Shown: positions 4,106 through 61,322, counted from the stretch's first letter. The stretch: 64,000 nucleotides of DNA from Bugula neritina (GCA_964035545.1 OZ037766.1:992001-1056000); one strand, 5' to 3'. Translations and numbers: made by a program. Notes: a model not told the origin generated them from the sequence alone.

Positions 4106-4180
4106 ATGCAGCAGGAATCTGCTAAGAAGAAACCGGCCATATTCCAAGCCACTAAGGACCCGTGGTACGGGCCTCTGGAG
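4106..4180 (+). CDS. Putative first coding exon ([25 protein letters not shown])
   Basis: ATG follows a CAG acceptor at 4088-4090. Strong GAG|GTAAGA donor in phase 0, matching the next exon. No homology support. Confidence 0.6.
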
Positions 4181-7100
4181 GTAAGACCCACACCTTCTGC
4201 ATATTATGTAACACGACTAGTTTAGCCAGCTTACAGTACAAGTCATCTCTGTCAATGCTTCCATCTGAGTTCTACATGAAGACTTACCATCAAATGATGC
4301 AATGCTGGGATAAGTGCTGACTAGGTATATGCTGTCATAATGTGCTCAATGAGCATGCTCAGTATAGCTTGTCTCAAGGGGCTGCCTTAGGCAGCACAAC
4401 AAATATATATACAGTCCTAGTACACTGTTGATCTCTACTTAACCTGCCAAGTGCTCTGCCTTCTACTCAGTGCTGCAGTTAGTTACTCTAATGACTCCAG
4501 TAAGCTAGAGTTGCATTAACTGACACTCAACATCCTGCTCAAAAGTTTTTAGTTTATGCTGTGAAATTTACTAAAGTCATATTATTTTTAGCTCAGCTTT
4601 TAACTGAAAATCAATTCTAGAACGTAATAAAGTTAATTTAATTTTTCTTTAAATGTTTCTAAAATCTGTAATTTTTTTAGCATCTTTAGAGCAATTTTTT
4701 TAAACAATTAGCTTTTCACTAACTACGGTATCTAGTAGAAATACTATTCAGCTGCTACAAGGGAGAAACTATCAATGTGCTGAGTTGCATGACACTATTG
4801 AACAGTTTTTTCGATTGGAATTTTTTACCATCATGCTGTAAAAGGTATTGCAGTAAAAGAGTGGTACAATCTCTGAGAAGGTTGTATCACATAGTTGGTA
4901 ACCGTATCAGACGTAAATAAGCTTTCTCTTTTGTCTCAGCACCTAAGTTGGAAGTTGCCAACATAATATTAATTTCTCTAACTTTAACTTGTGAACTTTT
5001 CAGATTAGTTACCAGATCAATACCCCATTTTGCTAACTAACATAGACTCACGTTATAACATTATAAACAATGTTGAGATGCCACTGAAACTTCCTCCAGG
5101 CATATACAGAGGTTACCAGTTGTATTCTAGACTTGAAAAATCTTATGTATATAAGTATTTGAGGTTAATATTTTTTGCTGCGAGAAATTAGAAAGTCAGT
5201 AATTATTTTGTCCAAGTTTTCCGACTAAAGAAGTTGAACTTATTAGAAAAGTGAAACACTATATATCTTTTAGTGCCGGTGTTTAGTATAGAATATAGAT
5301 GGTGTATACTGTATAGTATGTATACTGTATAGTATGTATACTGTATAGTATGTATACTGTATATAGTATGTATACTGTATAGTATGTTAAGTCACATTAA
5401 ACAGTTTCAAAATCATTCATTTTTTCCAATAAATTCAACTAAATAAATCAACAGTTTCATTGAATAAGAGTTGAGTAAGCAGTTAGTTTGGCCACGCCCT
5501 TCGTATCATCCACACTGGGAGACCTGATGACTCGCTAACTGTTTCTCCCAACTGTTTACACAAGGGGAGCACTGTTTCTCCCAACTGTTTACACAAGGGG
5601 TGCAATATTTACTCTGTAGGAGTCGAGTAGCACCTCATCCAGTAGGAATGAGAAATCTCGTCGCAGTCTCAAAGCGGGGCCCTACACTACGCCCCAGGAT
5701 GCTGTGTACAGAAGTAGCAAGTACCAGGCTAACTCTGGTGTCCCTGTCAGCTACCCCAGCTGGGGGAACAGAGCAGGGGTCTATGTTATGGAGCCAACCA
5801 CTTCTAAACTCAATCCCAGGTATACTTTCTTCCTGTTGAATGTGTAATTCTTGTACATCACAGTTATGTCTTCTTTATGGCTGGTTACCAAATCTTTATA
5901 CCTTACAGTCTAGAGAAACTATTTCGGTTGGAGACAGACTTCTACTGTGTTTGCTTATAAAGTCGAAATACTTCTCATGGAGGTTTAATAGTTACTGGAC
6001 AGAGCATTAAACACCTCAATATTGTATTACTCTGTTGCAATGTCAGTTGAATGTTAAATTTACTGACTTTATTTCTAATATTACTGACTTGAGGTATTTC
6101 AGTGTTATAAACCTAGACTATTTGTCCATATTTATTATGCCAGAAGCAGCACAGAGTTGGGGGTCACAATATTTGACTCACTATATTTCAGTAACACTTC
6201 ATATCACGCAGATATAGTTACATGACATTTTAAATGCTCATTTCTTCATTGATATAAAATACATATAGGTCCTATTAGCTTTTCTGTGAGCAATGTACAA
6301 TGTTTCCTAGGGCATTGAAGATAACTGAAAGCATCCACAACACTTTGTCATCAGTGTATGACGTCTCAACTTGCAGTGTTATATAATTTACTAAGAATAA
6401 CTTGGCTCATATGACTGAATAATCGAAGAATAAAGTGAAACAATTTGATGCAAGCTGGTATTATAGCTACAATCTCTAAACTGAATTGTCTAGGTGTCTA
6501 GGAGCAGCCAGTGAGTGCAGGCTATAGCGGGTAGACAATTGATCAATTGAAAATGTTTAATTTTCTTTCAAGAAACTAAATTACTCAAATTTTACCAGTT
6601 TCATACTTAGGTTGCTGGTATGTCAAAAGAGTCAGCTAAAAATTATTTTCCATTCATTTACATCTTTCTGGTTTATAAGTTTTTTGTCATGTCCCACTAC
6701 TTTTTAAAAGGCTTGAATTTTATTTTAGTTTGATTTGAAACAATTTCCAAAGAAATTAGATGGTCCTAAGTAAAACTATAATTATTATTACATAGATCGG
6801 CTGCTACGTTAAACCTGGAGTTGTTTGCTCTGTTTACCATTTAATATAAACAGTGGAAGTAATATACCTGTATTAATAACTGTTCAAAAGTTTTCTTTTC
6901 ACTTAAGCAGTTATTGATTGAAAAAATTTCAACCTTTCTTTTGATAGTCTTTGCAGAATAAACTTTCAAGTTTTAAATAAAGGATTCTTCATGTTATCAG
7001 GAAAATATTACAAAGCAAAATTTCCAACTTTACACTGGAGAATTTCCACCTGTCTGAAATATATGGTATTGTTTAGCAAATTTGTAGAGATAAAATGTCA

Positions 7101-10100
7101 CTACGTAAGAGTATAGCATCATGCTGTCTTTTAAAGGTGGTGGTACAGTAAAGCCACGGCAGCTTTTCAACGGAAAAGAGAGACGAATAAACGGGCAATT
7201 GCTGCCTTGGTTGGCGTAGCTTTATTATTGCTGCTTGGAGCTGTCATAGCCACAGCTATCCTAGGTATGCAACTTTCTCCTGGTGTTATCCAAAAATATA
7301 CTGAATGTATTTTAATCTGTTATAAAAACCAGGCTCTAAATTTTTACTGTAAATAAATAGAATATTTTACGATTACTCTTTTTCTATTCCTTGTTTAATG
7401 CTAATGTTCTTTATACCAACACATGGGATATGTGTTTTACAGCTTACAGCTAAGATGTCAGAATGATTTGTTTGTGTTGAGCTGAATGTTTAACAATTTA
7501 TGGTTTCATGTACATGTTTAATTTAAATAATTTTATTTTTTAGTTTTACTACCAAAGACGAAGGATGTGTATGGTAAGAGTGTCGTAATTATACATACAT
7601 ATACATATATACATATACATTATACATATATATCTATAATATATATATTATAGGTTTAGCTGGGTATTATGATATGCTAAGTGTTCAGTATACTTTGACT
7701 TTTCCTATTTGTAAGTGATTATATTTAAACAAGGTCAGATTACTCTAGTGACCATTTGTTCTCAGCTGTTTACTCAGGATTTCTACAAACTGGTTTAGCC
7801 AAGCATTTCAAAACAACCCCCTCTTATGATTTGCATATTGTTTCTCCCTCAGCATCATGTGACCATAGTTTGAGGACCTCCTCCCTGTAGTGTCTGCGCT
7901 TAGAGACATGAACCAGAGCCCCCTGGTGTCAGATTGAATAGTTTCTACTTGCATAACTTTGCTATTGTAAATTGTAAATACAATGACAACAGGAAAGTCA
8001 CCTGTACTTTTCCCTGTCTCTAGTCACAGCTATTCTCTTCACATACACCTACACCTAAGATAGCAGGTTTAACATCTACATAGAGCAAGTGAGATAAAGT
8101 ACGTGGAGTTGCTTTCTTCTTGTAACTTCAACTAATAATATTCTTGACATTCTTTAATTGATCAAATGATGGTTTCACTTAAAAGCAGACATCTCTAAGA
8201 TAGCTTGTAGACCTCTGATCTGGTTTTGAGTCTAATACCACAATGCAACACAAACACACCAATAGCCTAGTTGCAGTTTTCATCTCAATAATGGAGGGTA
8301 GAGGCTGCTACTGTTCAGTATTTCATTTAAAATAAGCCAATCATCTTTCTGCTAGCCTGTCTTTTGGCACTAACTATGTTTTGTGTTATTACTATGAACT
8401 GAAACTGTAGCAACTAACTCCCTGCAGAATAATATATTGTCTATACAAATTTCTATATATCTACTTTTAAGTTTGTATTTCTAAATATTTCCCGTAATGT
8501 AGATGTGGCAGTGAATGGAACTTTAAAACTCATCAATGAGAATTACATTTCATCGTATGCAGACGCTTCGTCTGCCGAGTTCATTTCCTTCCAAAATAAA
8601 TTTTGTGCTGCTGTAAGTATTCTACTTTTAATTATTGTAACTTTCAGCTTCAGTTTGAGTAGTTATTGTAACTTTCAGCTTCAGTTTGAGTAGTTATTGT
8701 AACTTTCAGCTTCAACTTATAATTGGAAGCTGATAACTGTGAAAAGCTGTGGGTAGCTGTGAATAATATCTTGGGCTGGTCAGATTGTGCTTAGTTCCTA
8801 AAAGTAACTTTGTTTTTTAATTTCAATATAATTTTAGCTTCAATTTCATAGTTTCACAGGAAAGACTGGACATGTTGGGGTTTGAAGGCTGATGTGAAAA
8901 ATCAAGCCCCTAGCTGTGTGCTAGGTTTAGTCTTATTGTGCTTCTGCATTCTTTTTATTTTATGTGATTCCTTTTTTGGGTTTTCATGAACTAACCATGT
9001 TATTATATATGCACTATCTAGTGTCACCTTGTTCGATGTGAATGCATACTGTTTATGTTGATTAGATGGGAGCTGTGTATAAAGATGACCAGGAGTTATC
9101 TTCTCTCTACAAAGACTGTGAAGTCACTCAACTCAGGTGACTGGCAATGCTTAATTAACTTGGTCTTTGCTCTTTAGAATTATATTATTAAATGAATTAT
9201 GGTATTATGTTGGTCAATAATTATACATGTACTTACTAACAGAGCATGCTGTTCTACAGTACTTGGTCGTAGAGATGTCGTCATGAAAGCATTTGAGTTG
9301 ATTTCCATTGTAAAGCTGCCATATAGTTGAAACTTGTTTGAGACTATATCAGCTGAAACACTAGTATTATGCTCATTTTTATCAGAATCATATTGACTCA
9401 TACTGACTAACACTGATTTACATTGACTCATACTAATTCATACTGACTATCACTGATTTACATTGACTCATGTTGACTCATACAGGCTCATGTTGACTAA
9501 TATTGCATGACTATTATATCGGGCTGAAATTAGCACCACAGTAGTCAACTTATTATGATTTCCATCTTATGTGTGTTTTGATTTGCTTCTAGTGATGGCA
9601 GTGTGATTGTTGAATTTCTACTCGCCTTTGAGAGAACAGATGGTGATATAGCTGCAGTGGAAATACTAGCTCAAGCCACAGATGTGGTTGTGGCAGCCGT
9701 GGCTGATCAAAGTCTGGGCACCTACATAGTTGATCCTAACAGTCTCACTTTAAATGGTGAGTAGATCAAATGGTGCTCCCAAACTGCCTAAAGCTCACAA
9801 ACTACATAATGTCATTTGATTGTTATTATAGTTTGGCTATCACAATGAGAAGTGAATTTTATCGGTAAATGATATGATTGGTCTGTACTTTAGATTTTGG
9901 GTAAATTGTAAAATATTATGTTTTTTCAAGAAATTATAATTTTAGACTTTCAAGTTCTGAAAAAAAATTTAAATTGCAGGAGATGAAATAAAAGTTCCAG
10001 AAACAACTGAAAGTACACCAACTACTACCACTACTACCACTACTACACCAACTACTGCTACTACTACTACCACTACTACTACACCAACTACTACCACTAC

Positions 10101-13100
10101 ACCAATTACTACTACTACACCAACTACCACTACACCAACTACTACCACTACACCAACTACCATTACACCAACTACCACTACACCAACTACTACTACACCA
10201 ACTACTACCACTACACCAATTACTACTACTACACCAACTACCACTACACCAACTACTACCACTACACCAACTACCATTACACCAACTACCACTACACCAA
10301 CTACTACCACTACACCAACTACTACCACTACACCAACTACTACCACTACACCAACTACCACTACACCAACTACTACCATTACACCAACTACCACCATTAC
10401 ACCAACTACCACCATACCAACTACTACCACTACACCAGAACCTAATACAAGTACACCAACTAGTACTACAACAACTGTAGTTCCAACCACAACAAGTACC
10501 ACCACAGTGCCAACAACCACAGTAGCCACTGAAACTGTAGTTGGTAAGAGACGCGGCTCTGTTGTTCATATCTGTTTTCCAATTCTTAAACAAATAGTAA
10601 TTAGCAGAAGCTATCAATATTTAAGTTTTCAGGAGTTTGGTTTGAGAGATGCATGAAGTTCTGTGATCTTCTGTAGCTGCATACAACTCATCCGCAAGTC
10701 TCAACAAGAACTTCACATCTGATCTGATGAACAGTTCATCTCCAGAATTCCAGAGCGAGGCCGAGATATTCTGCGCTGGTGTGGCTGAATCCTACCAGCA
10801 GTCTAATCTCTCCGATTCCTACCAGGGCTGCAAAGTCACTGGGTTTGAGTATGTGTGTAGTGCAGAGCTCATTAGTGCTCGTACATCTCGTCAGCTCCGC
10901 TAATGTTTGTATAAATTCATGATTTCAAATTGATGTTGACTCAAATGTTGTTTGCTAAGTCAATTTTTTTGAGATTCTGAAGTCCCTCAATTTTGTTATG
11001 TTTGGTAGGCTCAATTTTCAATTGATTTTGCAAGCTTGTTTTCAAAATTAAATTAGCAGCAGCATCGTTTCTGACTTTGTTGAAAATGAATCATTAAAGG
11101 TGAAGGGAGCTTACTTTGCAGTATACAATTTTCCCATTGGAATTGATGATCTCTTTTAGATTATTTTATTTGACATGGTTTATGTAATGTTGCAGGTCCG
11201 GATCGATAATAGTAAACTTCATCATAGTCTTCACGTTTATTGTTGAACGACCTGTGACGGACTCACCTGGTACCACCGGCAGCCCTTCATCGACTGCAGA
11301 GGAGCTCCAAATTAATGTGTTGGCAATTCTTGTGATTCAACTTCCTACCAGAATTGATTCAGTATCTGGGAACAGTGTGTCAGTTTCTGGTAAGTTATAG
11401 TGTGTACTACTGTATAGTGTGTACTACTGCATAGTGTGTACTACTGTATAGTGTGTACTACTGTATAGTGTGTAGTGTATACAGTGTAGTGTGTACTGTG
11501 TAGTGTGTACTGTGTAGTGTATACTACTGTATAGTGTGTATGTATCTGTCAGTATCTATATAAGTGATAAGTGATTACGTATTCTGAATGTTTATGTAGG
11601 CGTATGTGTGTTTAATGCATAAATGTGTTATAAAGCAGTTGACTGTTAATTGAAGTTGGATTTGTCAAGAATAAATTTTTGCTTCAGCTATTCCTGAAGT
11701 AGAAGTAAACGTGGTGCTGCAAGTGATAGGATTTGAATTTCCCACCACACCTGAGGCTACGACCTCGACATCCACAGGCCAGCCTAATGTTACAAGTCCA
11801 GTCACTACAGAGCAGACCACAGGCCAGCCTAATGCTACGAGTCCAGTTACTACAGAGCAGACCACAGGCCAGCCTAATGCTACGAGTCCAGTCACTACAG
11901 AGCAGACCACAGGGCTGCCTAATAATACAAGTCCAGTCACTACAGAGCAGACCACAGGCCAGCCTAATGCTACTAGTTCAGTTACTACAGAGCAGACCAC
12001 AGGTCAGCCTAATGATACAAGTCCAGTCACAACAGAGCAGACCACAGGCCAGCCTAATGCTACAAGTGCAGTCACTACAGAGCAGACCACAGGCCAGCCT
12101 AATGCTACGAGTCCAGTTACTACAGAGCAGACCACAGGCCAGCCTAATGCTACGAGTCCAGTCACTACAGAGCAGACCACAGGGCTGCCTAATAATACAA
12201 GTTCAGTCACTACAGAGCAGACCACAGGTCAGCCTAATGCTACAAGTGCAGTCACTACAGAGCAGACCACAGGCCAGCCTAATGCTACGAGTCCAGCTAC
12301 AACAGAGCCGACCACAACCTTAATTCCCGATATTCCAGATGTTTTACCTCAAAATATTGGTCAGTAGAATAGAATAGACCCTTTTCAGAGGTCCCAAGGT
12401 CTTCCTTACAATTGAGAGTTGTGGTCTCCCAAAATGAAGTTTGTTGTGCAAAATAGGCTTGAACTCATTTTTGTGGTTTTGGTTGCTGAGCAATGCTGAA
12501 GTGCCACTTTAGCATTGCTCAGTAACCAAAACCACACAAATGCTTTCAAGATTATTTCTGTCAAAATTATCCATGAAGAAATATTTTTAATTTTTTTTGA
12601 ACTGATAATGTGTGTGCTTATACCGAAATATCAATCTCCTAAAATAAAGATTCTATAACATAATTAGAATTTTAATCAGCAGCCAAACTTTGAATTTTTA
12701 ATGAGTTTGTTCTTTATACACAGGTTTAACCTATTCCCTTTGGGAGACAACTCTAATTGTAAAGGGGATATGAGGAACTTCTGAAAAGGGTCTAGTGCAT
12801 GTAATTAACTCATCGCAAGCTGCACCATTTGCTACCATTTCTAAACTAATACCTAAAAATAGAGTTTAACTAAATCAGTTTATTAATTATTTACTATGTG
12901 CTATATATTTTTATTGTATTTTGTAATTTTAGTGGTATTGATGATGATTATCACAAGTGGTGCACCTACAGCTTCTGAACTGATTAGCCGAAATACAGCT
13001 CAGATGACTGAAGTCTCCCAGCATATTTGCTCCAACATATCTCCTTACTACAACTCCACAGCTGGCTATGTTGGTTGCAGGCTTGCATTTGCAAGGTTTG

Positions 13101-16100
13101 TTTAAATGGTTTTTGAAAATTTTGTTTCTATTTTCCATCCTTTGATTATATAAATTGGATAACATGAAAGTGACTAACATTGATTTTACCGTGCAAGTAA
13201 ACTGATGGGGATGTTTTATTTGTTACATTGCTTCCTCAGGCATGTATGTATTGTTGCAGCTAATGTTAATAGGGTTTGAAGTCGAAGTCTTCACACGTAT
13301 AGCGTCCCCTGTAAGCTCACTATTATACCAATCATACTGTTGAACTGTAGAATTACCTTGAATAACTTTTTGCTAAAGTGAGAGCACAACACGTGGAAGC
13401 ACGGACCTTCATGTGATACTAGTGTTTCGATGGAGCGGTGAAGTTTCTGTATCCATGATTCTGGAGCATGCTCAGCTGGTGACGGAGACAGTTGAGTCTG
13501 CATTGTCTAGTTGGAACATTACATCTGCACCAACACTGGCTGGTAGGGACAGTATTCTGTGATCCATCAACTACATCATGTTCATTTTGGGGATGCAAAC
13601 TAATCTCTATTCCATTACATGTGGATTTTGCCATTGTGCTTTGCTATTGTTTTTTTATGGGAGATACAGGTCATAATTTAGTTTGCCGTTGTTGCTCAGA
13701 ATGGAATTTTGAAAGTATAAAGCATGCGTGCATCTCCCCCATGGTATATACCAGTTTTTTGAAATTCCTCTTATTTTATGAGGTGCCTTCTTTACAGTGA
13801 TTCCAGACTTGACGCTATACATCCGCGCTGTGCGACAGATAATCATTGAAGGAACAGCTAATCTCTGTCCTGGTGATAAGTTCTCATGTGGTGATGGTCA
13901 ATGTATTGAGCTAACCGAAGTTTGTGACTTTTCCTACAACTGTTACAATGGGGCTGATGAACTGCAATGGTGAGTAATAATTTAAATATTAATATCTAAT
14001 ATCTTTTTATAAACTTAACAACTTGAGTAAAGTGTTTAGGCACAATGTTGAAGTTGTAGTTTCAGGTTTGAAAAACCATGAGAGGTTCTCGTAACTTGCG
14101 CACAAAATATGAGACAGGTTTGTCTTGTAAAAATTTAAAAGCAAAGTAAAGCAGATGGAAATATAAATGAACTGTATTAAAAGAGATATTAGTATTAGTA
14201 TTAGTTCATTCGAAGTTTCCGTTAGACATAGAAATAACAATCTTATGAAATTTATGATCCTAGTTAATAAGATGCAAGTCTTGCAGTCTTGGTTTCAACA
14301 TCTTTTGAAGGCACGACTTCAAGTCATTGAAACTACATGGCAAACCAACTTACTTTTTCCATTTAGAAAGGAATTATTTGACTAGGTTTGAAGCAACAGT
14401 TTTTTTTCAGAAAAGATATATACATGAATTTAGCGATTTTTTGTTAGTGTGCAGTTATCTGGAAACGACAACTCAGAGAAAAGCGGATAGAAATTATAGA
14501 TTTGAGAGGCATATTTTGATCCATTTATGTTTATATATATAATTCACATCTATATTTGTAAACTGAGCTTAAAGACTGAAAATTTGCAATGAATTAAACA
14601 GGCGTGATAAACATGGCACCGCAAAATAGTCTTCGTAACCTATATTATGCTTTGATTTAGAACTTACCACTGGAAAGCGAGTTACTCGCATTATGAAAGC
14701 TTGCTTTAAGCACAAATAGTTGCAATAAAATTTGTAGAGAAAGGTCTATAGAAATGATAAAAAGACTGCCTTGTTTCAAGACCAGATACATTAACTTGCT
14801 GCCATGATGTTTGGATAAAGCTCAGTAAATAATTGTACATGCTTGAATGTATTGAAGTCTAATGGTAAAATGATTCATCTATGGTGGTTTCAGCGCAGAG
14901 GTATGCAGCCATGACATACTGGAGGAATGTAGAGATGATATTACGTATACAAAGTCTCCCAATACATTGTTTAACTTGACGAGTGCAGATGACTACAGGG
15001 AATTTCTGAGTAATGTAACAAAGGTGATGGCGGGTTGCTCTATCGATGACTGCTGGATAAGAACTACAACTTGCAGGCTCATGTACCCAATATGTACTAC
15101 AAAACTTGAACAACAGCTATGTAGAAACTCATGTTTAGGTAAGAGCCAAAAGTATATTTCAGAGGTTAATTGGTTGTGTTTGACAATACTACATGTATAC
15201 GAAATTTTAGATTTCAATGGACTATATTGATATAAGCTGCATTGATTGCAGAGCAACTTTTATGATGCAATGTGATGATAAAAGCTTTCATATTGTGTAT
15301 TCTGGAAAACATTGTTGAGGTAGTTAGGTTTTTTGAATGTTGTAGACGGTGTGAGATACTCGTGTCACGGCGAAGGTAGAGACTATCTGGAATCATTATG
15401 TATGAAGTTGCCCGAAGAAGAATGCCTACCCGCAATTGAGTCACCCGTTCAGCCCTGTGGCGAGCATGAGTTTTCTTGTGGGGATGGTCAGTGCATTCCA
15501 GGTCTGGGGGTTTGCAACAATAAGTACGAGTGTCTCAGTGGAGCCGACGAAAAAGAATGGTACGTGATTTTTTATGATTGAGGTTGACAGGTAGACTGTG
15601 GAATTTGTGCAAATCTTTTTTCATAATATGTCAGAAATTCAAAACATAAGTTTTTTATTTGGGCAGGCAAATCTAAACATTGCGTTTTATTGTGTCTTCA
15701 CAGCGACGTGAAATGCTCAGCAGAAGTTCCAGCCCAGTGTGCCGAATTCATCCCATATACAACTTATCCCAACAAGTTGTTTAATCTAACCACAGAAGAT
15801 GAATATGGGAACTTTTCAGCGTCTATAGAGATGATTCTGAGGAATAACTGTACAGGTGTTGATGAGTACTGGGCAACATGGGGTGTATGCAACATGATGT
15901 TTCCACGCTGTCTTCTAGGATTTGAACTTCAGCTGTGCAGAAATACTTGTCTTGGTATGTGCTAGAATTGACTATTGTTTTTTCATAGACAAATCGGTTC
16001 ACTGGGCCAACGGATGGATTACATCGCCAATGTTCAAATGCAATGCGATGCATCGTCAGAGTTTACAATGTCTTCACCATGAAAAGCTGGCTTCTGGCCT

Positions 16101-22100: not shown

Positions 22101-25100
22101 TTTTTTTAATGTTGTAGACGGTGTGAGATACTCGTGTCACGGCGAAGGTAGAGACTATCTGGAATCATTATGTATGAAGTTGCCCGAAGAAGAATGCCTA
22201 CCCGCAATTGAGTCACCCGTTCAGCCCTGTGGCGAGCATGAGTTTTCTTGTGGGGGTGGTCAGTGCATTCCAGGTCTGGGGGTTTGCAACAATAAGTACG
22301 AGTGTCTCAGTGGAGCCGACGAAAAAGAATGGTACGTGATTTTTATGATTGAGGTTGACGGGTAGACCGTTGAATTTGCGCAAATATTTTTTCATAATAT
22401 GTCAGATATTGAAAACATAAGTCTTTTATTTGGGCAGGCAAATCTAAACATTGCGTTTTATCGTGTCTTTACAGCGACGCCATATGCTCAGCAGAAGTTC
22501 CAGCCGAGTGTGCCGAATTCATCCCATATACAACTTATCCCAACAAGTTGTTTAATCTAACCACAGAAGATGAATATGGGAACTTTTCAGCGTCTATAGA
22601 GATGATTCTGAGGAATAACTGTACAGATGTTGATGAGTACTGGGCAACATGGGGTGTATGCAACATGATGTTTCCACGCTGTCTTCTAGGATTTGAACTT
22701 CAGCTGTGCAGAAATACCTGTCTTGGTATGTGCTAGAATTGACTATTGTTTTTCATAGATAAATCGGTTCACTGGGCCAACGGATGGATTACATCGCCAA
22801 TGTTCAAATGCAATGCGATGCATCGTCAGAGTTTACAATGGCTTCACCATGAAACGCTGGCTTGTGGCCTTCTTTCAAAAGCAAACAGTGGATTTAATAA
22901 AATTTTTTATAACAAATTTTCTAGAAAACATTGTTGAGGTTGGCTCTTTTGAATGTTGTAGACGGTGTGAGATACTCGTGTCACGGCGAAGGTAGAGACT
23001 ATCTGGAATCATTATGTATGAAGTTGCCCGAAGAAGAATGCCTACCCGCAATTGAGTCACCCGTTCAGCCCTGTGGCGAGCATGAGTTTTCTTGTGGGGA
23101 TGGTCAGTGCATTCCAGGTCTGGGGGTTTGCAACAATAAGTACGAGTGTCTCAGTGGAGCCGACGAAGAAGAATGGTACGTGATTTTTTATGATTGAGGT
23201 TGACAGGTAGACTGTGGAATTTGTGCAAATCTTTTTTCATAATATGTCGGAAATTCAAAACATAAGATTTTTATTTGAGCAGGCAAATCTAAACATTGCG
23301 TTTTATTGCGTATTTGCAGCGACGCCAAATGCTCAGCAGAAGTTCCAGCCGAGTGTGCCGAATTCATCCCATATACAACTTATCCCAACAAGTTGTTTAA
23401 TCTAACCACAGAAGATGAATATGGGAACTTTTCAGCGTCTATAGAGATGATTCTGAGGAATAACTGTACAGATGTTGATGAGTACTGGGCAACATGGGGT
23501 GTATGCAACATGATGTTTCCACGCTGTCTTCTAGGATTTGAACTTCAGCTGTGCAGAAATACTTGTCTTGGTATGTGCTGGAATTGACTATTGTTTTTTC
23601 ATAGATAACTCGGCTCACTGGGCCAACGGATGGATTACATCGCCAATGTTCAAATGCAATGCGATGCATCGTCAGAGTTTACAATGGCTTCACCATGAAA
23701 CGCTGGCTTGTGGCCTTCTTTCAAAAGCAAACAGTGAATTTAATAAATTTTTGTATGTCAAATTTTCTAGAAAACATTGTAAAGGTTAACTTTTTTGAAT
23801 GTTGTAGACGGTGTGAGATACTCGTGTCACGGCGAAGGTAGAGACTATCTGGAATCATTATGTATGAAGTTGCCCGAAGAAGAATGCCTACCCGCAATTG
23901 AGTCACCCGTTCAGCCCTGTGGCGAGCATGAGTTTTCTTGTGGGGGTGGTCAGTGCATTCCCGGTCTCGGGGTTTGCAACAATAAGTACGAGTGTCTCAG
24001 TGGAGCCGACGAAGAAGAATGGTACGTAATTTTTTATGATTGAGGTTGACAGGTAGACTGTGGAATTTGTGCAAATATTTTTTCATAATATGTCAGAAGT
24101 TCAAAACATAAGTTTTTTATTTGAGCAGGCAAATCTAAACATTGCGTTTTATTGTGTATTTGCAGCGACGCCAAATGCTCAGCAGAAGTTCCAGCCGAGT
24201 GTGCCGAATTCATCCCATATACAACTTATCCCAACAAGTTGTTTAATCTAACCACAGAAGATGAATATGGGAACTTTTCAGCGTCTATAGAGATGATTCT
24301 GAGGAATAACTGTACAGATGTTGATGAGTACTGGGCAACATGGGGTGTATGCAACATGATGTTTCCACGCTGTCTTCTAGGATTTGAACTTCAGCTGTGC
24401 AGAAATACTTGTCTTGGTATGTGCTGGAATTGACTATTGTTTTTTCATAGATAACTCGGCTCACTGGGCCAACGGATGGATTACATCGCCAATGTTCAAA
24501 TGCAATGCGATGCATCGTCAGAGTTTACAATAGCTTCACCATGAAACGCTGGCTTGTGGCCTTCTTTCAAAAGCAAACAGTGGATTTAATAAATTTTTGT
24601 ATGTCAAATTTTCTAGAAAACATTGTAAAGGTTAACTTTTTTGAATGTTGTAGACGGTGTGAGATACTCGTGTCACGGCGAAGGTAGAGACTATCTGGAA
24701 TCATTATGTATGAAGTTGCCCGAAGAAGAATGCCTACCCGCAATTGAGTCACCCGTTCAGCCCTGTGGCGAGCATGAGTTTTCTTGTGGGGATGGTCAGT
24801 GCATTCCAGGTCTGGGGGTTTGCAACAATAAGTACGAGTGTCTCAGTGGAGCCGACGAAGAAGAATGGTACGTGATTTTTTATGATTGAGGTTGACAGGT
24901 AGACTGTGGAATTTGTGCAAATCTTTTTTCATAATATGTCGGAAATTCAAAACATAAGATTTTTATTTGAGCAGGCAAATCTAAACATTGCGTTTTATTG
25001 CGTATTTGCAGCGACGCCAAATGCTCAGCAGAAGTTCCAGCCGAGTGTGCCGAATTCATCCCATATACAACTTATCCCAACAAGTTGTTTAATCTAACCA

Positions 25101-55100: not shown

Positions 55101-58100
55101 TTGTAGACGGTGTGAGATACTCGTGTCACGGCGAAGGTAGAGACTATCTGGAATCATTATGTATGAAGTTGCCCGAAAAAGAATGCCTACCCACAATTGA
55201 GTCACCCGTTCAGCCCTGTGGCGAGCATGAGTTTTCTTGTGGGGACGGTCAGTGCATTCCAGGTCTGGGGGTTTGCAACAATAAGTACGAGTGTCTCAGT
55301 GGAGCCGACGAAGAAGAATGGTACGTGATTTTTTATGATCGAGGTTGACAGGTAGACTGTGGAATTTGTGCAAATATTTTTTCATAATATGTCAGAAGTT
55401 CAAAACATAAGTTTTTTATTTGAGCAGGCAAATCTAAACATTGCGTTTTATTGTGTCTTTGCAGCGACGCCAAATGCTCAGCAGAAGTTCCAGCCGAGTG
55501 TGCCGAATTCATCCCATATACAACTTATCCCAACAAGTTGTTTAATCTAACCACAGAAGATGAATATGGGAACTTTTCAGCGTCTATAGAGATGATTCTG
55601 AGGAATAACTGTACAGATGTTGATGAGTACTGGGCAACATGGGGTGTATGCAACATGATGTTTCCACGCTGTCTTCTAGGATTTGAACTTCAGCTGTGCA
55701 GAAATACTTGTCTTGGTATGTGCTGGAATTGACTATTGTTTTTTCATAGATAACTCGGCTCACTGGGCCAACGGATGGATTACATCGCCAATGTTCAAAT
55801 GCAATGCGATGCATCGTCAGAGTTTACAATAGCTTCACCATGAAACGCTTGCTTGTGGCCTTCTTTCAAAAGCAAACAGTCAGTTTAATAAATTTTTTTA
55901 TAACAAATTTTCTAGAAAACATTGTTGAGGTTAGGTTTTTTGAATGTTGTAGACGGTGTGAGATACTCATGTCACGGCGAAGGTAGAGACTATCTGGAAT
56001 CATTATGTATGAAGTTGCCCGAAGAAGAATGCCTACTCGCAATTGAGTCACCCGTTAAGCCCTGTGGCGAGCATGAGTTTTCTTGTGGCGATGGGCAGTG
56101 CATTCCTGACATCAAGCTGTGTGATGGCACATTTGATTGTTGTGATTTCTCCGATGAGTCTCAATGGTACCTAATATGTATTTCTTCTCCAGCTCCCAAC
56201 ATTTCTGTTTATATGTCATGAATTGTGGTGCTGTTTTTTTCCTTGGTTCTAATCTCAGCAATTTGATCATACAGTCCTTTTTCATATCAATATTTTTTTT
56301 GTGCCATTTCAAACATCTATCGGCTGTCTGCTTTTCCATCTCAACTTGCATATATGCAAGTGCCAACAGCCTGCCACATTTTTCCCGCATTCTCTCTGGC
56401 CTTGTCTTGCTGTTCATTCAACCTGTTCTTCTTGATGTTCGATATTATATGTTATATAATTCTTTTTTCAGCCCAACCCTCTGTTCCGAGAATGTCTTGC
56501 AAGAATGCAGTCCGTTTGTTTCCTACACTACCCACCCTAACACAATGTTTGGTCTGAATTCAACAGAAGATTATGAGACTTTTGCAGCATCAATCAAAAC
56601 CATCCTTCAGAACAATTGCTCTGGATTTGATTTTTCCCATAGTACACGGGGTGTTTGCCTCATGATGTATCCACTCTGTCTTCTTGGTTATGAGCTTCCC
56701 TTGTGCAGACACGTATGTTTAGGTAGGTATTACAAACAAAGATACATCACAGCTGTTCAAACAGGTCTATTCTCATCAGTCACACTTGTCAAAAATGGGA
56801 AGCCTTTCATCTTGGTTCAGACATGTGTTGTTGCACATTTATATAGTGCGATTACTCTCTGCAGAACTCAATCATTTATCTCTTTTGTCTGAATTCCTTA
56901 GACAATCTATTCCAGCTATGTTTTATGAATGCCTATAGATGGTGTTCGAGGTATCTGTCATGGCGAAGGTAAAGACTATCTAGAGTCATTGTGTATGAAA
57001 TTGCCTGAAGAGGACTGTTTACCTGAAATTGAGTCACCTGATCATTACTGTGGAGAGCATGAATTCTCTTGTGGTGATGGCCAGTGTGCCGAGACTCTTG
57101 CCGTTTGTGATTACAAGTTTGACTGTCTCAATGGCCAGGATGAGGTGAACTGGTAAGTCATTTATTAATTTATCTCACTCACAGCTTTGTATAGTGGTTA
57201 ACCCAGCAGTTGCCTTTGGCCTTTTTTATTGCATAGCTACTAAAGTTTCCAGCTGTTCAGTTTACTAATTGCATTTCTATCACCTTGATATTATTTCAGT
57301 TCATATTCTAGTTGTCAGCAATTTGCTAGTAATTCTACTCAGCAATACTTCAATTTTGGCTTTCAAAGATACTGTTATGTTCTTTCTTTGAAATTAATTG
57401 TTTTCAGTAGTTAGTTGTTGGTTTCACTTAGTTTGGAAAAATAATGAGAGTAGAGATTATAGCCAAATTACTAGATATGTGCAGAGGTGAACTGCGCAAT
57501 GTTGCAGTCCTCACACCTGGAAGTGTATTAAATCTATTTTCACTTAAACAATGACTTATATTGATACTATCCTCTCAAGTATACTTTATGTCTACAGATC
57601 AAAATTTTATGTCTGTTGTGACAGTACCTATTTTCATATTCGGTATCATAAATGTTCATTCTGACTTAGTAATCCTGCCCTACTACCATGCATGGCAAAT
57701 TTGTTGTTTAAAGCATATAATTTTTTGAGTCAGCCCCTACTTTAAATTTCAATCATGCTAATAATTTTACTCCTACTTACAGCTTGGAAGTGTGCAATAA
57801 CAACATTCCATTCGAGTGCAGCGACGTTATACCATATTCCTCTCAAGCCAACCAGCTTTTCAACTTGAACAATTCCATGCAATATGCAAATTTCTCCAGC
57901 TCTATACAAGTGGCATTCTCCAACTGCTCCGTTGATCCCTATCTCTTGCGATGGGGTGTTTGCAATATTTTGTATCCGAGATGTCTACTTGATTTCGAAT
58001 TATACCTGTGCAGATCCACGTGTTTAGGTAAGTGGTATTCTGAATAAAATCAATAGTTTTTCAACATTATGGTGACTATATTGACACTTATATCTGTGAG

Positions 58101-61100
58101 AAGAAAGCTACACATATCCATTTAGTTTTATGATCTGCAGAAAATCTAGTTTTTATGGTGTATGTAACTAGTTGTACATGTAGATGCATGGTTCACTACC
58201 ATATTATATGTGCAAAATTATTCATTCTTATTTTGGTAATCTGTGTAGTCGGTGCTTTCAAAATCAAGCTCCTGATCATTGTTCTGTTTCTAATGCTTCT
58301 AATGCAGTATTATCAGACGCTGGAGTATAAATATTTTCAATGGTTTTTAGCTGCAGTGGTTCATCGCTTTCATATGCTTTGAAGAACAGTTTAATACCAG
58401 TAATAATTACTTTAGAGCATTATTAGCAACTAATAATGTTATCAGTTTTTTTACCAATAGCATAAAAACGGTTTCAACATACCATTCTTATTATAACTGT
58501 ACATTTAAGTTATCATTAACTGATATTTTAGTCATTATTCCCCCCCCCCCCCCCCAAAGACAATCATTATCACTCCATGATGATCTCTGTAATAGAGGTC
58601 AAAGATCTATTTTTTCATGATATTCTATTTACAATTGGTATAAACAATTTATTTAAAATAAGCTTTATGATGCTTCTATTATTAGTTTTTATACCAAAAA
58701 GTATCCCCTAATTTCTACTAATACTTTCTTTTATTACTTTTCTACTGGTGATACTTCATGAAGCAGTACTGTAAAAGTAAAGCATATTGCATCCAGCATC
58801 TTCTTCATGTTGAAACATCTGAGGCTCGCAGCTGTTCAAATCTCAACCAGTAAAACAACTTGCTGCTCCTACAGTTTTTTTTGTGAAATTATCAAAATTT
58901 ATGCTAACTCTGAAGTGATGCCATTTTTAACTTTTCAAATATCTTTTTGACATTTTATTTTTATCTTGTAAAATATAATGCATGGGTGTCCAAATTGTTA
59001 TACTATTGAAATGTAGTAGATCTCACTTTTTAGTGATACCAAAAGTGTTGACTGTTGAAGGCTTTTAGTCAATTACACTTGCATTTCAACTAAACAAAGA
59101 TTCTGATTTAAAGTGCATATGTATGTATGTGAATCAACATCTTTGTTATTTTAAAGGCAGGTTTAAGTGATTATACTTGAGGGGGCTAGTTTAATTATAA
59201 ACACACCCATTTTGGTCTACTAGGCTATTCACTTCAAATAAGTTGGATTTAGAAGTAATATCATTGATATATTCATTACTGCAGGGATCATGTTAGATAT
59301 GTAATTACCAATAGATTCCATGTGTTGAAATGAGAACTTTTGCCTGTAATTAATTATACTTTTTAGAGACTTATATACTATTCAATATTTTGACAAAAAT
59401 TTAAATTTGAAGGAATCAATTCTTTATTTAGTATTAAAATTGATGTGGCTTATATTTTTTCTTGATTTTGATATCACTGTTGGTAGCAAATAAGTTCAAT
59501 GACACTTTTGATTTGATGATTTAAATAGTCTTTATGGTTGAACCTAATTAAAATTTAAATGAATCTTTATGATTTTTTGCAAAATTTCTTTCAAGTATTA
59601 TTATTAGTTTAAATTGTAATATAAATACAATGCTAGTAGAGGTCTTTTCTATAATCACATTCCTATTGACACTTTTCATACTAATCGTAATACCAATAAT
59701 ATTCAAAGCTATTTAAAAAATGAATAAAACTTGGGAAAATATGATTTAAAATAATATTATTAAGCATTAATGCTTCTGCTTAATCTGGTTATCAGTTTAA
59801 TTAGAATATTTTTGTAAGAATAACTATTATATTTTAATTGACATTAGATGCTTCGTTCTTACTATAAATTATAATAATAGTAAGACTATATCCCTATACT
59901 TGCTGTTATAGTGGTAATTATATAGAAGTAAACACCTAATTTGCTCACTAAAACTGTTTGAATATAATACTAAAGCAAACCAAAACCATTTGATATAACC
60001 AGTCTCTGACGATCACACAGATACTATTGCACTATGACTATGCCGTAAAACTAAATCACAATCGAATAATGTAATTGTAAAATAAATACAAATTGATGGG
60101 TAACAATTATAACATATTTGTTTTTTTTTATAATGATAACACAAGCCATATATCATTACAATTTAAATTCGTAAGTGTTAGTATATCTGTAAGTGTTAGT
60201 ATATCTGTAAGTGTTAGTATATCTGTAAGTGTAAGGATAATATTGAATAATAATGGTATAATTATTTATTTATTACATTCACGATATTGCTATTAGTATA
60301 AGTATTAGTACAATTAGTAATTAGTTACACTTAATCTTATTCAATGCAATAATTATCTGATTAATTCATTGCTGGTAGTAACTAGTAATACTTACCATAT
60401 ACTAGCAGTAAATGTAATACTAATAGTAATACTATAGTAGTACCATTAGTTAGTTACTATCATTATTACTAATAATTATGATAGATTATAATGTCAATAT
60501 TATTAGTATTTAATATTAATACTAATAGTAATACTAATACTAATAGTAATACTTATACTAATGACCTTACAGTTACTATAACTATTAATATTTATATTAG
60601 TAACACTAATACTTATAATACTAATACTAATACTAATGAACGTGACTTAGAGAAACAGAGAAATAGTAATAGTAATAACTTGTGGTTTGTTAGTTGCTTA
60701 TAATTTAAATTATATCTCTTAGTAAATTACTATTAGACTTAATATTTATAACTATAAGTATAAGCTTCCAGTTGCAATAGGAATATTTACTAAGCCCTGA
60801 AGTTGTTGTTGTATGAACATAGTTATTTATATTATTTAGCAATTGTAACTGCATAATCGTAACACATTTATGCATAGTTTTTAATATTTTGTGAAAGAAT
60901 AAAATACCTTTAATTATAGTAATGGTAAGAGCAGTAATTCACCAATGACTATCTCAACGAGCAGTTCAGTCTTCTGTGGCAAGTGATCATGTGATCAATA
61001 TAGTCTATATTGCTACTTCTTATTATTTCGTATAATCTCATGACAAAGTTGATAGTCTATTAGTTTCCAACCACAAATATTTTTAAGATTCGGAGTTGTT

Positions 61101-61322
61101 TCTCCTAAAGAAAGTAATTCCTGAACTGGCAACTTCTTCCAATCACTTATTTTAAAGTTACATACTCTAACACATTATCCGTAATCAATTTATTTTTTAG
61201 ACTTTGTGAACGTGAGTTGCAATGGCACATCAACTGGATATCTCCAAGACATATGCATGCAGTTGCCTGACAAAGATTGTATATCAGAGCCTATTGAATA
61301 TGATTACTTTCTCATTCCCTAA
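4106..61322 (+). CDS. Giant type II membrane protein: cytoplasmic tail-TM-SEA-mucin-SEA-mucin-SEA-(LDLa-Frizzled CRD)x51; ~8,830 aa, 116 coding exons; corin/TTSP-like stem without a protease domain
   Basis: Manual splicing gives one open frame from ATG 4106 to TAA 61320-61322. Every junction is GT-AG and phase-compatible. Domains were recognised from cysteine spacing and motifs; see the sub-features. Confidence 0.8.
5620..5819 (+). CDS. Exon 2, cytoplasmic tail ([26 protein letters not shown]...TSKLNPR)
   Basis: TAG acceptor, GC-richer open frame, and AG|GT donor in phase 2, which completes an AGG codon with the TM exon. Confidence 0.72.
7137..7573 (+). CDS. TM exon 7137-7264 ([42 protein letters not shown]) plus 30-nt microexon 7544-7573 ([10 protein letters not shown])
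   Basis: A basic cluster followed by ~25 hydrophobic residues indicates a type II signal-anchor. Donors are GTATGC and GTAAGA; phases 2-1 and 1-1. Confidence 0.82.
8503..9756 (+). CDS. SEA domain 1; exons 8503-8612, 9066-9136, 9593-9756
   Basis: [24 protein letters not shown]...FC...[22 protein letters not shown] shows the SEA pattern, a Cys pair and a G-S-V-I-V motif. Phases are consistent. Confidence 0.85.
9980..10543 (+). CDS. Thr/Pro-rich mucin exon ([11 protein letters not shown] repeats; 188 codons, phase 1-1)
   Basis: CAG acceptor at 9977-9979, open frame [18 protein letters not shown]...TETVV, GTAAGA donor. The ORF track missed it because it has no start codon. Confidence 0.88.
10677..11389 (+). 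CDS. SEA domain 2; exons 10677-10848, 11196-11389
   Basis: [24 protein letters not shown]...FC...[22 protein letters not shown] shows the SEA consensus with GSIIV. Confidence 0.85.
11397..11540. repeat. Intronic ~17-bp minisatellite (ATAGTGTGTACTACTGT)
   Basis: Visible tandem copies. Confidence 0.85.
11688..12359 (+). CDS. Second mucin exon with 12 x 45-bp (15-aa [15 protein letters not shown]) repeats
   Basis: Corresponds to ORF 11711-12367. CAG acceptor at 11685-11687, GTCAGT donor at 12360; 224 codons, phase 1-1. Confidence 0.9.
12377..12792. mobile_element. Non-autonomous MITE (Tc1/mariner-like, TA target duplication) in an intron
   Basis: Imperfect ~55-60-bp terminal inverted repeats (GACCCTTTTCAGA...TCTGAAAAGGGTC), TA on both sides (12375-76 and 12793-94), and no ORF. 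Confidence 0.75.
12933..13542 (+). CDS. Divergent SEA domain 3; exons 12933-13095, 13379-13542
   Basis: Same Cys pair (HIC...YVGC) and phase-2 junction as SEA1/2. The second exon is 164 nt, like that of SEA1. The motif has degenerated to [12 protein letters not shown]. Confidence 0.7.
13798..15138 (+). CDS. First LDLa (exon 13798-13969) and first, divergent Frizzled-CRD N-part (exon 14894-15138)
   Basis: [35 protein letters not shown], with the last Cys split TG|C across the intron. Then [29 protein letters not shown]. Confidence 0.88.
15300..56107 (+). repeat. ~846-bp tandem array (~48.2 units). Unit: exon A (214 nt; FZ C-part + LDLa), ~144-nt intron, exon B (251 nt; FZ N-part), ~237-nt intron
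   Basis: First exon A is 15346-15559, first exon B is 15704-15954, and the 49th exon A is 55953-56166. I counted 49 A and 48 B copies from the ORF track and the 844-847-bp spacing. Each unit encodes 155 aa with a 10-Cys FZ-CRD ([31 protein letters not shown]) and a 6-Cys LDLa. Confidence 0.97.
56472..58027 (+). CDS. Divergent terminal FZ/LDLa exons 56472-56722, 56939-57152, 57783-58027
   Basis: Same phases and cysteine pattern as the array; sizes 251 and 214 nt match the array and 245 nt matches the first FZ exon. Sequence is diverged and the introns are unique. Confidence 0.9.
60170..60232. repeat. 18-bp tandem repeat (GTAAGTGTTAGTATATCT) x~3.5 within an AT-rich intron
   Basis: Visible; it produces the spurious SVSISV ORF. 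Confidence 0.85.
61201..61322 (+). CDS. Terminal exon completing the 51st Frizzled CRD ([40 protein letters not shown])
   Basis: Strong TTTTTTAG acceptor in phase 1. Clearly homologous to the first half of exon A (SC...YL..CM.LP...C), followed by TAA. Confidence 0.88.

Follow-up and report, generated by a model that had tools for sequence, protein, structure and literature searches.

Frizzled, sFRP, Smoothened, ROR/MuSK, corin and MFRP each carry one or two Frizzled-type (FZ) cysteine-rich domains (CRDs) that act as ligand-binding heads. A locus in the genome of the bryozoan Bugula neritina raises the question of what kind of protein would carry such a domain 51 times. In the 64,000-nt stretch of B. 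neritina DNA analysed here (the window), a gene predicted on the plus strand between positions 4106 and 61322 reads as a signal anchor, a stalk of SEA and mucin exons, and a long array in which LDL-receptor class A (LDLa) and FZ-like modules alternate. The best explanation of the data is one real giant gene, restricted to the bryozoan lineage, for which expression and function are predicted and whose product would most likely be a structural, glycosylated and acidic surface filament; we put the probability of this reading as a whole at roughly 0.6.

The gene model comprises 114 exons and 26,244 coding nt, extends over ~57 kb and encodes 8,747 aa. All of its exon boundaries are AG/GT, no in-frame stop occurs, and the phase is unbroken from the ATG at 4106 to the TAA at 61320-61322. 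The phase of the full model was checked from exon coordinates with single split codons, and the exons located 5' of the first LDLa exon were chained by listing the frame-compatible splice pairs between open stretches. Because so many exons remain in phase without stops, a chance arrangement is implausible, and chance open reading frames (ORFs) were rejected. The original prediction, which was made from the sequence alone and proposed 116 exons and ~8,800 aa, is essentially reproduced in one unbroken frame, and its view that a single giant gene containing SEA and mucin exons encodes a type II membrane protein is also supported.

Between 15.3 and 56.2 kb the base composition is uniform (GC content 0.41, GC skew +0.13 to +0.17). 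Self-similarity is strongest for a shift of 846 bp and peaks again, less strongly, at its multiples, notably at 5075 bp (six units); Tandem Repeats Finder misses this array because the period is over the limit of the program. Each unit contributes two exons, referred to here as A and B. The A exon (251 nt) encodes the first seven cysteines of the FZ module, and the B exon (214 nt) encodes the last three cysteines followed by the LDLa module. A blastn search with the two exons of one unit (from 23200-24100) located 48 full A exons (starts from 15704 to 55465) and 48 full B exons (starts from 15346 to 55107), and all full copies of each exon are equal in length and at least 96.7% identical. An AG acceptor, a GT donor, a constant phase and the lack of a stop characterise all 96 core array exons, with the split codon encoding Cys at every B-to-A junction and Asp at every A-to-B junction. 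At the protein level the 48 units reduce to only nine different A peptides and 13 different B peptides, with 16 cysteines per unit that never vary. The intron between the A and B exons is 237 nt long, a multiple of three, in 41 units, yet it always contains stops.

Diverged exons, which belong to four flanking units, border the core array on both sides, and with these included the totals amount to 51 FZ-like and 51 LDLa modules. The terminal exon shares the acceptor phase of the B exons and shows homology to their first half. A profile built from four A-exon types and searched in six frames against the 216-Mb assembly gave exactly 51 matches, all of them in this gene within the window, so that both the exon count and the genome-wide profile bear out the number of modules predicted originally. 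The composition of a module is strongly biased, with 26 Asp and Glu residues versus nine Lys and Arg residues, a net charge of about -17 per 155 aa and three N-glycosylation sequons.

The pattern of variation among the 48 units indicates where constraint acts. The mean pairwise difference is 1.0% for the A exon and 1.6% for the B exon, versus 6.5% and 4.4% for the two introns, i.e., the exons are 3-6 times more conserved than the introns, and indels are exclusively intronic. The ratio of non-synonymous to synonymous polymorphism (pN/pS) is 0.38 for the A exon and 0.26 for the B exon. A pseudogene or a satellite was rejected on these grounds, together with the absence of stops and frameshifts. 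The central units are the most homogenised, a six-unit pattern recurs, and 17 pairs of units are identical, a combination typical of arrays shaped by unequal crossing-over and gene conversion. Since the gain, loss or skipping of a whole unit (465 nt) leaves the reading frame intact, the number of units probably varies.

The identity of the two modules differs in how readily it is recognised. Pfam scans, searches and folds were run exon by exon or on natural database proteins. In all four exon types the LDLa module exceeds the Ldl_recept_a (PF00057) cut-off of 24.1 bits, with scores of 32.5-38.7 bits, and six cysteines are present, the sixth being the split codon of the B-to-A junction in 48 of 48 units. 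On inspection, the core LDLa reads C-N-N-K-Y-E-C...A-D-E; two Asp residues of the canonical calcium cage are replaced by Asn and Glu, and the cage of the core units therefore appears partly degenerate, while the 49th B exon has the full canonical set.

For the FZ-like module, Fz (PF01392) is the top Pfam family in all four A-exon types with 14.9-19.2 bits against a cut-off of 32.1, a score which covers the A exon only, that is seven of the ten cysteines and profile positions 1-79 of 110. The original prediction expected Pfam to recognise all three domain types; by exon, LDLa and the second SEA domain pass, and Fz remains sub-threshold on the A exon. The ten-cysteine FZ pattern is nevertheless present in 48 of 48 units, with seven cysteines in the A exon and three within the first 26 residues of the B exon. 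The motifs Y..PN, P.C and CR..C are found as well and align to FZD8 in the HMMER alignment, and the C-terminal loops of the module appear shorter on inspection than those of FZD8. When PDB sequences were searched with a profile, CRDs of Frizzled-8 or Frizzled-5 accounted for 12 of the 16 matches, with E-values around 1.

Structural comparison gave a more consistent picture. The AlphaFold2 model of the A exon from the window, based on an alignment of 39 sequences, reached a predicted local distance difference test (pLDDT) value of 85.9 and a predicted template modelling score (pTM) of 0.74. Exhaustive alignment of this model to 48,161 PDB representatives placed FZ-type CRDs at all of the ranks 1-12 (FZD4, sFRP3, Smoothened three times, MuSK twice, FZD2, ROR2, Nrk, FZD7 and Sizzled), with Z-scores of 6.3-4.0, 74-77 residues aligned and root-mean-square deviations of 2.8-3.5; the next chains are unrelated and score at most 3.4. 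The top 15 Foldseek matches of the same model are all Frizzled CRDs (TM-score by query 0.51-0.58). In the ESM Atlas the three best shapes correspond to Frizzled receptors, Fz-domain proteins and mollusc corin-like proteins, and a search with language-model features retrieved only Fz clusters at the top (best score 0.88, 184 of 256 features shared). The fold of the whole module of a relative, a natural ORF that runs from the A exon through an in-frame intron into the B exon, produced the same FZ ranking. The call is made for the FZ fold because four different searches, each spanning the model in full, all place one family exclusively at the top ranks, the evidence covering the first two thirds of the domain. 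From these models we conclude that the ten-cysteine module is a strongly diverged FZ-type CRD, and the fold assignment made in the original prediction is supported by the structure ranking.

The module stands apart from the canonical FZ domains of its own genome. The Pfam Fz scan of the genome (E <= 0.01) detected 16 canonical Fz exons, all of them outside this gene. A relaxed search of the genome with the A-exon profile did not reach the canonical Fz exons and so carries no weight as a reciprocal test. Five Pfam Fz exon matches (27-51 bits) lie on the minus strand within 23 kb (G000:C2:4627290-4649976), on the same chromosome and ~3.6 Mb from the window. They form either a canonical multi-FZ gene (corin-like?) or a group of FZ genes, and could represent the evolutionary source of the module.

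Upstream of the array the model encodes a membrane anchor and a stalk. The transmembrane (TM) exon has a best 19-aa Kyte-Doolittle mean of 2.86, and six Lys or Arg residues and one Asp or Glu residue are found among the 15 residues preceding the segment. The strong TM segment, the positive-inside charge and the first exon without a signal peptide point together to type II topology. Exon 1 is joined to the TM exon only by a weak GTACGG donor at 4165, the single one in phase (phase 2) with the TM acceptor; a stronger donor, GTAAGA at 4181, does not match that phase. Which exon truly comes first is therefore uncertain, and exon 1 constitutes the weakest link of the model. Three SEA domains had been proposed for the stalk, of which the first two are supported. 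The first exon of SEA2 alone scores 34 bits with Pfam SEA (PF01390), over the cut-off of 26.4, and the first exon of SEA1 scores 17.7 bits, under it. The short middle exon of SEA1 (phase-0 acceptor, phase-2 donor) is needed to close the chain and parallels the middle of SEA2. The third candidate shares with SEA2, by inspection, the position of a phase-2 intron and a C...GC...G-S pattern, and has an atypical cleavage motif; it is called SEA-like only, because neither of its exons gets a Pfam match. The second mucin exon encodes 223 aa with 30% Thr and 14 sequons. A membrane anchor and Pro/Thr/Ser-rich tandem repeats, the two features that characterise a membrane-tethered mucin, are thus both encoded, with the mucin tracts constituting only ~5% of the protein.

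At the other end, the TAA directly follows the last FZ-like domain and no trypsin-type catalytic domain is encoded. Trypsin-type His, Ser and activation-site motifs were found on neither strand from 58 kb to 10 kb past the window (~16 kb), which together with the terminal stop bears out the proposed absence of a protease. Membership in corin or in the type II transmembrane serine proteases was rejected for lack of a protease.

The search of 1.84 billion representative proteins with a profile gave 38 matches, nearly all of them short genomic ORF fragments, and the sole annotated source was Watersipora subatra, a cheilostome bryozoan. Its models XP_067935639.1, XP_067935648.1 and XP_067935649.1 were automatically named 'low-density lipoprotein receptor-related protein (8)-like'. 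The Watersipora array is composed of 980-bp units, ~99% identical, with at least 32 units in 31.7 kb (OY755161.1, 717066-748744). RefSeq/Gnomon splits it into six adjacent models of 6451, 1282, 359, 765, 359 and 2118 aa; the largest carries SEA and LDLa matches, and the smaller ones are visibly mis-spliced, with pieces of introns skipped or retained. The split into six models is an annotation artefact of near-identical tandem exons. If merged, the models would exceed 11,000 aa. The core A exons are ~70% identical between the two species versus 98-99% within each array, a sign of concerted evolution.

Other relatives are fragmentary. A fragment 93% identical to the first A exon of the window originates from JGI contigs labelled AY690838, the accession of the Bugula neritina mitochondrial genome. 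About 30 distinct relatives read through the phase-1 intron at the same codon, after the seventh cysteine. In one of them (P0005) the equivalent of the A-to-B intron is open and in frame, and prokaryote-style gene callers therefore made a 223-aa 'protein' spanning both exons. The most diverged relative (P0034; ENA ERZ23487833, scaffold BRYA16-1) occurs a single time in 14 kb (L004), and therefore at least one organism has a single-copy or edge-type FZ-like exon and no dense array. A homologue search with the 765-aa Watersipora model returned nothing above threshold, an outcome that we attribute to repeat and LDLa words swamping the search and not to a lack of homologues. A tree built from the modules was mostly unresolved.

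What could such a protein do? The analysis shows how the gene is built, that its coding sequence is constrained, which domains it carries, that it is unique in the genome and that a second bryozoan has a homologous array; the function is inferred. In the reading that we favour, a short cytoplasmic N-terminus and a signal anchor would be followed by a stalk in which SEA domains alternate with two heavily O-glycosylated Thr/Pro tracts, and the rest of the ectodomain would form a rod of 51 LDLa and diverged FZ-type repeats ending without an enzyme domain. From typical domain sizes, the length of the filament may roughly reach several hundred nanometres. The protein would serve as a structural filament of the surface or of the apical matrix, in the glycocalyx, in cuticle attachment or in a protective coat, and its length, negative charge, N-glycans and calcium-binding LDLa beads would outweigh the ligand specificity of single FZ domains. 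Autoproteolysis of the SEA domains may let the ectodomain shed under force, as in membrane mucins. The structural or protective filament is favoured because the homogenised units are in-frame cassettes and because of the bulk physicochemical features, and it is ranked above a Wnt or lipid sink as the most likely function.

Several observations weigh against this reading or parts of it. The Pfam Fz score is under the gathering score on every exon tested (15-19 bits versus 32.1), and among the relatives it ranges from 0 to 22.6 bits, with no match in several and 22.6 bits reached by one fragment. The C-terminal third of the FZ domain is unmodelled, residues 85-204 of the relative's fold being below confidence. 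The absolute structural scores are modest (Z 6.3, Foldseek E-values of ~0.1-0.3), and the tools themselves warn of Z-scores below 8. Spliced transcript fragments number zero among the 38 matches from the protein library. The linkage of the TM exon to the array, exon 1 and the inclusion of all units in one transcript are predicted from the gene model, and the count of units could be affected by the assembly of near-identical repeats. Finally, the structural function is argued from architecture only.

Among the other explanations, a calcium-binding protein of the body-wall matrix, in which acidic LDLa/FZ beads would bind Ca2+ in cuticle organisation or calcification, survives best, and we still consider it unlikely. 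The strong negative charge of each module and the presence of 51 copies of a calcium-binding fold speak for it, and the gene occurs in two cheilostomes, one lightly and one heavily calcified. Against it, the 48 core units have Asn instead of Asp after the fourth cysteine of LDLa and Glu before the fifth, so that most of the beads would have the partly degenerate cage described above, and nothing similar appeared in a lophotrochozoan biomineralisation proteomics paper.

A polyvalent sink or carrier for Wnt or lipids is less probable and, in our estimate, a rather poor prospect. Here the FZ-like domains would keep their hydrophobic groove and buffer, present or transport ligands at the cell surface. 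The fold of the module is that of FZ CRDs, which in FZD, sFRP and Smoothened have palmitoleate, sterols and Wnts as ligands. MFRP, a protease-less type II protein with LDLa and FZ domains, is reported to engage lipids (PMC12036977). The genome scan which finds 16 canonical Fz exons misses the module, however, and the segment between its eighth and ninth cysteines counts 11 residues on inspection, compared with ~17 in FZD8, where this segment belongs to the lipid groove. That the 48 units are nearly identical also suggests selection acting on bulk properties, or concerted evolution, rather than diversified ligand binding. The original prediction had offered both a Wnt/lipid sponge and a disulfide-rich structural bead; the bead fits the data better, and the sponge is not supported, the module being too diverged for Pfam Fz. 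If, against these odds, the 51 FZ-like domains were functional lipid or Wnt sites, the protein would be a shed-able polyvalent scaffold for morphogens or lipids at the cell surface and a new way to shape Wnt or lipid gradients in a colonial animal.

Just as improbable is that the locus holds more than one gene or gives rise to many isoforms, with the SEA/mucin part and the array being separate units or with few units in each mRNA. The absence of spliced fragments among the library matches and the weak donor of exon 1 leave room for this, whole units are in-frame 465-nt cassettes, and RefSeq divides the Watersipora array into six models. That division, however, coincides with obvious mis-splicing in 99%-identical repeats, and the 6451-aa model joins SEA with LDLa modules. 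In B. neritina, moreover, the phases are consistent from the third, SEA-like region through LDLa to the first FZ exon, with good splice sites, and the array by itself encodes neither a signal peptide nor a start. A non-functional tandem duplication or an assembly artefact, that is a recent unselected amplification or an artefactual copy number, could draw on the similarity of the units and on the difficulty of assembling long near-identical arrays, but it is hardly credible in view of 26 kb of coding sequence without a stop or frameshift, exons conserved over introns with pN/pS below 0.4, cysteines kept in every unit, and an independent homogenised array in another bryozoan family (~70% amino acid identity between species, ~99% within).

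Table 1. Features of the predicted Bugula neritina gene in the 64,000-nt window (scores are Pfam bit scores).
Feature	Position	Strand	Description
Putative first coding exon	4106-4164	+	ATG, hydrophilic N-terminus, no signal peptide
Signal-anchor/TM exon	7137-7264	+	Predicted type II topology; AG/GT boundaries
SEA domain 1	8503-8612, 9066-9136, 9593-9756	+	Three exons; G-SVIV autoproteolysis-type motif
Mucin exon 1	9980-10543	+	187 aa, 69% Thr, 16% Pro; 18-bp tandem repeat beneath
SEA domain 2	10677-10848, 11196-11389	+	Two exons; G-SIIV motif, phases consistent
Mucin exon 2	11688-12359	+	45-bp repeat, 12.1 copies; twelve 15-residue repeats, each with an N-glycosylation sequon
SEA-like region 3	12933-13095, 13379-13542	+	Candidate by inspection
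First LDLa exon (module 1)	13798-13969	+	Ldl_recept_a 32.5 bits, cut-off 24.1
First, diverged FZ-like A exon	14894-15138	+	40% identical to core A exons; Fz top family, 17.7 bits
Core array	15346-55715	+	48 units of 844-847 bp, each with a B exon and an A exon
49th B exon	55953-56166	+	Diverged LDLa half, canonical acidic calcium cage; Ldl_recept_a 38.7 bits
Penultimate diverged module	A 56472-56722, B 56939-57152	+	Fz top family, 19.2 bits; LDLa 33.4 bits
Last FZ-like A exon	57783-58027	+	Fz top family, 14.9 bits
Terminal exon	61201-61322	+	Last three Cys of the final FZ-like domain, then TAA; without LDLa

Other genes border this one on both sides. Upstream, an open frame at 548-1000 on the plus strand matches the C-terminal domain ADH_zinc_N_2 with 24.9 bits, just under the cut-off, and is probably the last exon of a gene for a zinc-binding dehydrogenase. 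Two minisatellites flank this exon: one at 1-430 (18 bp, 23.9 copies, 92% matches), whose sequence can be read as an open frame rich in Thr, and one at 1358-1902 (28 bp, 19.5 copies, 100% identical). A long (GT)n microsatellite lies ~1.8 kb beyond the end of the window. Further downstream, 5.7-6.5 kb beyond that end, two open stretches on the plus strand match the halves of a Macro domain (L008:5707-6551; 26.3 and 28.4 bits, above the cut-off) and mark the next gene.

The kinds of domains described here are all known. Their architecture, the number of FZ-type domains and the diverged, bryozoan-restricted FZ subfamily are undescribed in the literature searched, which yielded nothing on multi-FZ proteins, on bryozoan FZ, LDLa or SEA proteins, or on matching components of bryozoan matrix proteomes. 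No described precedent for tens of FZ domains was found there, as the original prediction had maintained, and the only public trace of the architecture is an automatic, fragmented annotation. A giant membrane-anchored glycoprotein in which the FZ fold recurs 51 times as a bead would extend the known uses of this fold. The array is common to at least two bryozoan families, in each of which concerted evolution keeps it homogeneous, and it provides a natural experiment on whether lipid binding persists in a diverged FZ domain. The protein is a candidate for a major component of the surface or matrix in a phylum for which molecular cell biology hardly exists. A problem of annotation comes to light as well, the Watersipora homolog being scattered in RefSeq over several mis-spliced 'LRP8-like' fragments.

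Among characterised proteins, corin resembles the Bugula protein in its type II anchor and in an ectodomain mixing FZ-type CRDs with LDLa modules, and one of the three best ESM Atlas shapes for the module is a cluster of mollusc corin-like proteins. Corin has two FZ domains, eight LDLa modules, an SRCR domain and a trypsin-type protease, whereas the Bugula protein is predicted to have 51 strictly alternating LDLa-FZ pairs together with SEA and mucin domains, and neither SRCR nor protease. MFRP is a protease-less type II membrane protein with a Ser/Thr/Pro-rich stalk, CUB domains, LDLa and a single C-terminal FZ CRD. The topology, the lack of a protease and the combination of LDLa with FZ are thus similar; the Bugula protein differs in having no CUB domain, in its SEA domains and in 51 FZ-like domains instead of one. 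The type II proteases with SEA domains, enteropeptidase and matriptase, share the membrane-proximal SEA with a G-S-V/I-V motif and the LDLa modules, but end in a catalytic domain. The SEA-containing membrane mucins of the MUC1 and MUC16 type likewise place a membrane-proximal SEA beside Thr/Pro-rich tracts; in vertebrates, however, they are type I proteins without LDLa and FZ. The closest likeness is to the Watersipora models, in which the A exon of the module is ~70% identical, the intron positions are the same, the modules form a tandem array and SEA is found in the upstream model. The two differ in the unit, which is 980 bp long and ~99% homogenised in Watersipora, and in that the Watersipora array is represented by six fragmented, partly mis-spliced and uncharacterised models.

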